64,000 nucleotides of DNA from Macrostomum lignano (GCA_002269645.1 NIVC01000678.1:1-64000), one strand, 5' to 3'. Shown: positions 41,929-42,431, numbered from the stretch's first letter. Translations and numbers: made by a program. The notes: generated by a model not told the origin, from the letters alone.

Positions 41929-42431
41929 ATGCACATCAAGCCGTCATCAGCAGGCCTGGCCGCTCTGCACCTGGCTCTGCTGCTGCTGTACGTCAGCGCC
42001 GACAAGGTCGAATCCGTCAGAGACGACAAGGCGGCTTCCGTAGAGGACAAAATCGACTCAGGTGAGTTCTGTAAACTCGTGCGCTGTGCTAATTCAGCTG
42101 CCAATCAGAACTTATCAGGTGAAGCTTGATCGCCCCAACAAACTGTCCCGCAGGCTTCGACATTCTGGTGCCGGTCTCCGAGCCGGAGCGGCGCAAAATC
42201 TGCAGCAAGTGCGCCGACTGCCTGATGTGCGCCAGCGACGCCGCCGGCTTCGAAGACGGCATCGACGCGTTTCCAGTGGCAGCCGGCAGCAAGTTTGAAA
42301 TCCACTGGACGGACAGCGACCCGGTGGCTGAGAACCGGCGAAAGCGCATCGTGGACCTGACAAGGCCGGCCAGGTACCACTGCGGCAAGTGCCCGACCTG
42401 CTACTGCTACTACAGAGCCTGGCGCGGCTGA
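41929..42431 (+). CDS. 136-aa secreted Cys-rich peptide precursor; exons 41929-42061 and 42154-42431
   Basis: Signal peptide MHIKPSSAGLAALHLALLLLYVSA; phase-1 GTGAG...CAG intron; RRK and RRKR cleavage sites; two 4-Cys clusters; terminal Gly before the stop. Confidence 0.8.

Follow-up and report, generated by a model that had tools for sequence, protein, structure and literature searches.

What does the short gene between positions 41929 and 42431 of a 64,000-nucleotide stretch of the Macrostomum lignano genome (contig NIVC01000678.1, bases 1-64000, assembly GCA_002269645.1; hereafter, the window) encode, and what kind of product might it release? An earlier note on this DNA had described here a secreted precursor with two four-Cys modules, furin sites and C-terminal amidation, which it could not match to any known family. 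The locus, Mlig009393, is a real two-exon gene encoding a secretory prepropeptide. Judging from sequence comparison, it belongs to a family of convertase-processed four-Cys peptides that is so far undescribed and apparently restricted to one lineage; as a precursor, it is of a known kind. We refer to this window copy as paralogue A, and to the other two groups of the family as B and C. The parts of the gene and of its predicted precursor are as follows.

41929..42061, + strand: exon 1, with the ATG, the signal peptide (aa 1-24; nt 41929-42000) and, after it, the first part of the acidic propiece (aa 25-44 and the first base of codon 45).
42062..42153, + strand: GT..AG intron of 92 nt, phase 1, with 5/92 variable columns among three genomic copies.
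42154..42431, + strand: exon 2, with the remaining propiece, the two Cys modules and the stop codon.
42189..42197, + strand: RRK (aa 57-59), an upstream basic site, putative and unconserved (LQF in paralogue B).
42198..42230, + strand: module 1, ICSKCADCLMC (aa 60-70), with the pattern CxxCxxCxxC, within the propiece; ICGICQECRLC in B, absent from C.
42231..42335, + strand: acidic propiece segment (aa 71-105), which holds the semi-conserved KFEIHWTDSD; H95, D98 and D100 are invariant across paralogues.
42336..42347, + strand: RRKR (aa 106-109), a furin/proprotein-convertase-type R-x-K-R site; R106, K108 and R109 are invariant.
42348..42425, + strand: predicted mature 26-mer IVDLTRPARYHCGKCPTCYCYYRAWR (aa 110-135; module 2), with the pattern CxxCxxCxC; 25/26 identical to B, 21/26 to C.
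42426..42431, + strand: Gly136, a possible amide donor, and TGA; the Gly is not conserved, being Lys in B, and C stops after WR.

The start ATG at 41929 follows an in-frame stop located seven codons upstream, and the two exons are joined at a donor, CAG/GTGAGT, after 42061 and an acceptor, CCCGCAG/G, before 42154, such that the spliced coding sequence (CDS) of 411 nt, closed by the TGA at 42429-42431, encodes 136 aa. The translation matches the NCBI hypothetical protein BOX15_Mlig009393g3 (Macrostomum lignano) along its entire length, with 100% identity. The Mlig_3_7 annotation derives from RNA sequencing (RNA-seq; StringTie/TACO) combined with a transcriptome assembled de novo, and it draws on evidence from trans-splicing and poly(A) (PMC5730564). 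The 42061/42154 junction, whose lack from transcripts the earlier note had named as a point on which its proposal would fall, is transcript-supported because it is carried by a matching gene model that was built from RNA-seq, the support being that of the model rather than of inspected reads.

Mlig009393 is present in three near-identical genomic copies, with RPL15 adjoining. Two of these, L001 and L002, for which the downstream flanks are fully annotated, lie upstream of the same RPL15, CTU1-like and mitochondrial RNA polymerase genes; for the third, L003, RPL15 is the only downstream neighbour listed. The CDS is selectively conserved among these three syntenic copies: in a 1.1-kb alignment, a single site of the 411 in the CDS is variable, and that synonymously, compared to 36 of the 684 sites in the intron and flanks (Fisher p = 8e-7).

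Downstream of the gene, an AATAAA at 42624..42629 (+), 193 nt past the stop codon, is the sole one within 800 nt and an uncertain candidate for the poly(A) signal. It is perhaps not the signal in use because the other two genomic copies have AATGAA in its place, along with small indels there (alignment columns about 995-1005).

Relatives of the precursor were found within M. lignano. When 1.84 billion representative proteins were searched exhaustively with HMMER, two matches emerged; both being from this species, they are paralogues, not orthologues. Group B comprises UniProt A0A1I8GT89/GL94 (110 aa), for which no genomic locus is on record, and group C comprises Mlig012200g1/g2 and Mlig028322g1 (92 aa). 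In every paralogue sequence reaching that far, R-x-K-R is followed by the same core, [ILV][VI]DLTxPAxYHCGKCPTCxCYYRxWR. The convertase-type site, RRKR in A, RSKR in B and RMKR in C, is invariant in position, directly before the conserved peptide; in the aligned core, R-x-K-R, DLT, PA and YHCG are invariant, and KCPTC, CYYR and WR are identical in the five full-length sequences (sequence P0002, truncated after YHCG, was not counted for these last three). The 26-mer of A matches that of B at 25 and that of C at 21 of its 26 positions, with whole-protein identities of 35-56%. Between A and C, the proportions of nonsynonymous and synonymous differences over RxKR and the peptide are pN 0.18 and pS 0.81 (saturated), and pN reaches 0.64 in the sole alignable stretch of the propiece. 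By these measures, the A/C split is an old duplication, with the peptide evidently held under strong purifying selection.

Other parts of the precursor vary in how far they are kept. A signal-type N-terminus and an acidic propiece were found in the checked member of each of the groups A, B and C (one sequence each), and A and C have in common the two-exon layout with a phase-1 intron inside the propiece. Module 1 is present in A and B and absent from C, and a scan of the paralogue C locus (L004 9001-12500) with tblastn and regular expressions found no hidden module-1 exon there. The C-terminal end is Gly-stop in A, WRK-stop in B and WR-stop in C. Given that module 1 and the amide donor vary among the paralogues, the conserved functional unit would be RxKR together with the four-Cys 26-mer, and module 1 and the amide donor are lineage-specific additions. 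All elements of the layout that the earlier note had laid out (signal peptide, acidic propiece, RRK, module 1, RRKR, module 2 and Gly-stop) are in place in the window, and its view of a secreted-type precursor with module 2 as the product agrees with the conservation of RRKR and module 2 as the core of all three groups. Its furin sites fare unequally, RRKR being conserved as R-x-K-R, whereas RRK before module 1 is unique to A, with LQF ahead of module 1 in B; a Lys at P1 makes, moreover, a poor convertase site. Amidation, too, is plausible for A, where the Gly is present, but for A only.

The window copy and paralogue C also differ in GC content at third codon positions (GC3; 0.82 versus 0.53) and in intron size (92 nt versus about 1.1 kb), and this contrast may reflect different genomic or expression contexts. 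Searches of the window and the four loci with tblastn and regular expressions found no further copies of the family. Directly upstream of paralogue C, at L004 6588-8885 (+), the annotation has a further small gene, whose 133-aa product matches nothing in Pfam; it is not a family member by tblastn.

Beyond M. lignano, the databases searched contained no detectable relatives, and since their coverage of other Macrostomum species is unconfirmed, species restriction of the family is to be read in this sense. Word-indexed searches of 5.8 billion proteins with the single sequence, the full profile and the core profile returned only M. lignano proteins, and a metagenome scan with core-motif patterns gave 46 pattern matches, none of them relatives. 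The Pfam scan of the precursor produced a sub-threshold chance match only, and none to the insulin family; the sequences of the PDB, queried with the whole protein, with module 2 and with the piece that carries module 1, likewise gave only chance matches (E > 0.7), to alcohol dehydrogenase, an antibody Fab heavy chain, the S27a zinc ribbon and MORN repeats. Literature searches on the gene identifiers, UniProt identifiers, old transcript identifiers and peptide strings found no paper, and no match was present in the supplements of Weber et al. 2018 or of other papers on M. lignano. The inability of the earlier note to name a family is thus borne out by the Pfam, PDB, HMMER and literature searches, none of which gave a match to a described family.

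The predicted product can be delimited closely. The signal-type N-terminus of A spans residues 1-24, with a hydrophobic 10-mer, LAALHLALLL (mean Kyte-Doolittle 2.5), and a predicted cleavage site, VSA/DK, that fits the -3/-1 rule; the propiece is acidic (isoelectric point 4.3, net charge -10). In the 26-mer of A, the four Cys are confined to 9 consecutive residues, and there are five aromatic residues; the net charge is about +4 (+3.8), compared to +4.8 in B and +1.8 in C. The computed monoisotopic mass of the A product is 3188.48 Da if amidated and 3246.49 Da if Gly-extended, each with two disulfides. If 8 Cys were placed at random among the 112 residues after the signal peptide, two four-Cys clusters, each of at most 10 residues, would arise with P of about 6.5e-5.

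A lead to the setting in which the family acts comes from paralogue C. Mlig012200.g2 is listed in Table S6 of Brand et al. 2020 in the class 'Tail', as 'germline_FACS' in the neoblast data set and with the in situ hybridization (ISH) result 'prostate' (PMC7336406), and the probe table gives ISH 'prostate;testes' for transcript RNA815_44529, with Weber et al. 2018 as the source (PMC7336406, citing PMC5977470). That study surveyed 146 tail-limited, socially plastic transcripts in search of seminal-fluid candidates, of which transcripts 76 proved to be prostate-limited and 22 'prostate plus elsewhere', mostly testis (PMC5977470). The listed probe primers map to exon 1 and the 3' untranslated region of the paralogue C locus, and the spliced amplicon, 101 + 212 = 313 nt, has exactly the listed length, an independent confirmation of paralogue C's identity and splicing. 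RNA815_44529, that is, Mlig012200, is among known systems the closest relative and a true paralogue, with RxKR, the two-exon phase-1 layout and 21/26 mature residues in common with A; the window copy differs from it in the extra four-Cys module, the longer propiece and the terminal Gly. Like many transcripts of that screen, Mlig012200 is small and secreted-type, with no domains or BLAST homologues. In the published work, paralogue C was treated as an anonymous transcript, and the peptide and the family are undescribed there; this record of C as a prostate/testes transcript had been missed by the earlier note. The window copy was not found among the entries listed in the tables of PMC7336406.

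Given the tail-specific expression of paralogue C, with prostate gland cells and testes as its sites, we favour a reproductive setting, and by analogy with this paralogue, male reproductive or seminal secretions are the most likely setting for the family. Our preferred reading, to which we give about an even chance, is that Mlig009393 encodes a convertase-processed secreted signalling peptide, probably a reproductive one. The signal peptide would be removed after Ala24, and a furin/PC-type (proprotein convertase) enzyme would cut after Arg109 of RRKR, M. lignano being known to possess a PC2-type convertase (PMC4490696); in paralogue A only, carboxypeptidase and PAM-type enzymes might then convert the terminal Gly to an amide on Arg135. 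The four Cys would form two disulfides, either within the peptide or between two peptides, and the released peptide, of about 3.19 kDa, would serve as an extracellular signalling ligand on a conserved target. Module 1 would be part of the discarded acidic propiece, perhaps as a folding or masking partner of module 2, and not a second hormone chain.

Several points weigh against this reading of the locus. Cleavage, amidation, disulfide formation and secretion are all predictions, and the signal peptides were judged by hydrophobicity and the -3/-1 rule, in one sequence per paralogue group. The conservation evidence is that among paralogues. AlphaFold2 models are of low confidence, with a predicted local distance difference test score (pLDDT) of 44 for the precursor and 58 for the conserved core, too low to interpret; the core model, given no weight, hints at a hairpin of an IVDLTRP and a CYCYYR strand, with two Cys in the loop and two starting the second strand. 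The probe for C shares only 59 nt with the mRNA of A, at 76% identity, so that cross-hybridization is not expected and the ISH of C is uninformative about A. Finally, seminal-fluid proteins usually evolve fast, whereas the 26-mer is strongly conserved between old paralogues.

A bolder version, to which we assign only a slim chance, is that the family forms a hormone-and-mimic pair, in which one copy, possibly the amidated A, is the animal's own signalling peptide, with a conserved receptor as its target, and the near-identical 26-mer of the prostate paralogue, carried in the ejaculate, targets the receptor of the partner. If so, this would be a flatworm counterpart of the insect sex-peptide logic, on an undescribed four-Cys CxxCxxCxC scaffold. 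Sexual conflict and the function of seminal fluid in hermaphrodites are studied with M. lignano as a model, and the majority of its prostate transcripts lack any recognisable function; the present family offers a sharply delimited, strongly conserved candidate bioactive peptide that is testable, with predicted masses, and a compact framework of four Cys without a counterpart among described peptide families. Given that the family is seemingly confined to one lineage and that its function is inferred, we consider its wider importance to be moderate.

Other explanations of the same features have to be weighed against a reproductive signalling peptide. It is possible, although in our estimate unlikely, that A is a neuropeptide or neuroendocrine hormone precursor, with expression in neurons or in endocrine cells and processing by PC2, the amidated, disulfide-constrained 26-mer acting on a G-protein-coupled receptor or similar within the same animal. 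The classical prohormone architecture (signal peptide, acidic spacer, basic site, conserved C-terminal peptide and terminal Gly) and the focus of conservation on the peptide are what would be expected of such a precursor, and the PC2 homologue of M. lignano is nervous-system-specific and has a severe RNA interference phenotype (PMC4490696). Yet the amidation Gly is not kept in B and C, the sole family member with expression data, paralogue C, is expressed in the prostate and testes rather than in the nervous system, and no similarity to catalogued lophotrochozoan neuropeptide families was found (CLCCY was tested directly; Pfam and HMMER were null). We regard as rather improbable the alternative of a host-defence or deterrent peptide, in which the acidic propiece would neutralise a cationic, aromatic, disulfide-rich 26-mer that is released in mucus, gland secretions or ejaculate. 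The charge of about +4 and five aromatics of the A 26-mer set against -10 in the propiece, the terminal Gly that could give an amide, and the frequent presence of antimicrobials in reproductive secretions are all compatible with it. However, the four Cys packed into 9 consecutive residues are a poor fit to a disulfide ladder across two strands, C has a charge of just +1.8, and the N-terminal half, IVDLTxPAxYH, is strictly conserved, Asp included. Host-defence and toxin peptide families typically combine a conserved propiece with a variable mature part, the reverse of the pattern here, where the mature region is conserved and the propiece divergent. The beta-hairpin antimicrobial analogy drawn by the earlier note is, for these reasons, a weak one.

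The same note had raised a two-chain hormone, in which interchain disulfides would link module 1 to module 2 and the acidic spacer would be cut out, in the manner of insulin and relaxin. A has two similarly spaced four-Cys modules, each with a basic site before it, and B keeps module 1 as well, but C lacks it, with no hidden exon at its locus, RRK is LQF in B, there is no basic site between module 1 and the spacer, and neither a Pfam match nor the Cys spacing points to insulin; this proposal is already largely refuted, and we hold it to be highly improbable. The CxxC and CxC clusters resemble metal-binding knuckles, and weak matches to the zinc-ribbon knuckle CGKC in ribosomal protein S27a (E = 2.7 and 3.1) would suit a small Cys-rich protein that is not processed, such as a secreted one with a metal-binding or structural role, in which the clusters bind metal or cross-link and RxKR is left uncut. 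These matches are, however, at chance level, the best PDB match there being an antibody Fab heavy chain (E = 1.2); RxKR is invariant, conservation begins sharply just after it, module 1 is dispensable, and the signal-type N-termini in A, B and C argue for the secretory pathway, such that we consider an unprocessed protein very unlikely. A chance ORF (open reading frame) or annotation artefact, with no functional gene, might be suspected from the shortness of the frame and from the failure to find a homologue outside M. lignano. Against it stand the RNA-seq-based gene model, the selective conservation of the CDS among genomic copies, the old paralogues under purifying selection, and paralogue C, which was cloned from cDNA and gave tissue-specific ISH; an artefact is already effectively refuted and has, in our judgement, almost no chance of being true.

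Several known systems resemble the M. lignano family in part. The CLCYY string in paralogue C provided a lead to the CLCCY family, which was rejected: hhalign gave a probability of 1.3%, with only the signal peptides aligned (Platynereis sequence, PMC3890597). The CLCCY/CCWamide-type lophotrochozoan prohormones are like A in having a signal peptide, an acidic propiece, a basic site and a single conserved C-terminal disulfide-rich peptide, but their peptides are larger, the Platynereis sequences having about 8 Cys (PMC3890597) against the four of CxxCxxCxC in A, and show no sequence or profile similarity to it. Drosophila sex peptide and DUP99B, short secreted male accessory-gland peptides with a conserved Cys-constrained C-terminus common to paralogues, act on a receptor of the partner and offer a functional analogy only; they have 2 Cys, no RxKR-released C-terminal peptide and an unrelated sequence, and for the M. 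lignano family, transfer to the partner is only conjectural. The beta-hairpin antimicrobials (tachyplesin/polyphemusin, gomesin, protegrin and arenicin) are, like the A product, short, rich in Arg, Tyr and Trp, four-Cys and sometimes amidated, with anionic propieces, but their Cys are distributed over two strands rather than contiguous, and the M. lignano peptides differ in their lower, unconserved charge and reverse conservation pattern, with no homology. Insulin and relaxin likewise have two Cys-bearing segments split by an acidic stretch; the number and spacing of their Cys differ, however, and in the M. lignano family module 1 is missing in C, the excision sites are missing or unconserved, and no Pfam match is obtained. 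Guanylin and uroguanylin, too, offer an analogy only: their precursors, of about 100 aa, have as their sole active product a short four-Cys, two-disulfide peptide at the extreme C-terminus, as is predicted for A, but with a different Cys spacing, no RxKR and no sequence similarity.

Elsewhere in the window, precomputed Pfam labels identify four genes.

31929-33914, + strand: arginyl-tRNA-protein transferase (ATE_N/ATE_C).
43430-44558, - strand: ribosomal protein L15e (RPL15).
45845-47937, - strand: CTU1-like tRNA thiolation protein (ATP_bind_3 and zn-ribbon_14).
49936-52431+, - strand: phage-type (mitochondrial) RNA polymerase.

The downstream gene order repeats in L002, with RPL15 also in L003, and the ATE gene is listed for L001 only; this repeated order is consistent with the known hidden polyploidy of M. 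lignano. The window is packed with long minisatellite arrays (5563-6749, 11113-12391, 18416-19024, 20456-35146 and 43844-57211) of differing units of 14-38 nt in up to 60-90 copies, for example, a 28-nt unit repeated 64 times at 27290-29085 and a 19-nt unit repeated 61 times at 5563-6749; (ACAG)n occupies 18416-19024, and a TC-rich tract 11113-12391. These arrays account for strong local swings in GC and AT skew, and some are intragenic, such as that at 43844-44238 inside the RPL15 gene span. The roughly 8 kb upstream of Mlig009393 (33915-41928) contain no called gene in the public annotation and are covered by overlapping mechanical ORFs on both strands (e.g., 40684-41291). Coding-like poly-Cys runs that originate from (TGC)n-type repeats occur at about 35336 (+) and 40392 (-).
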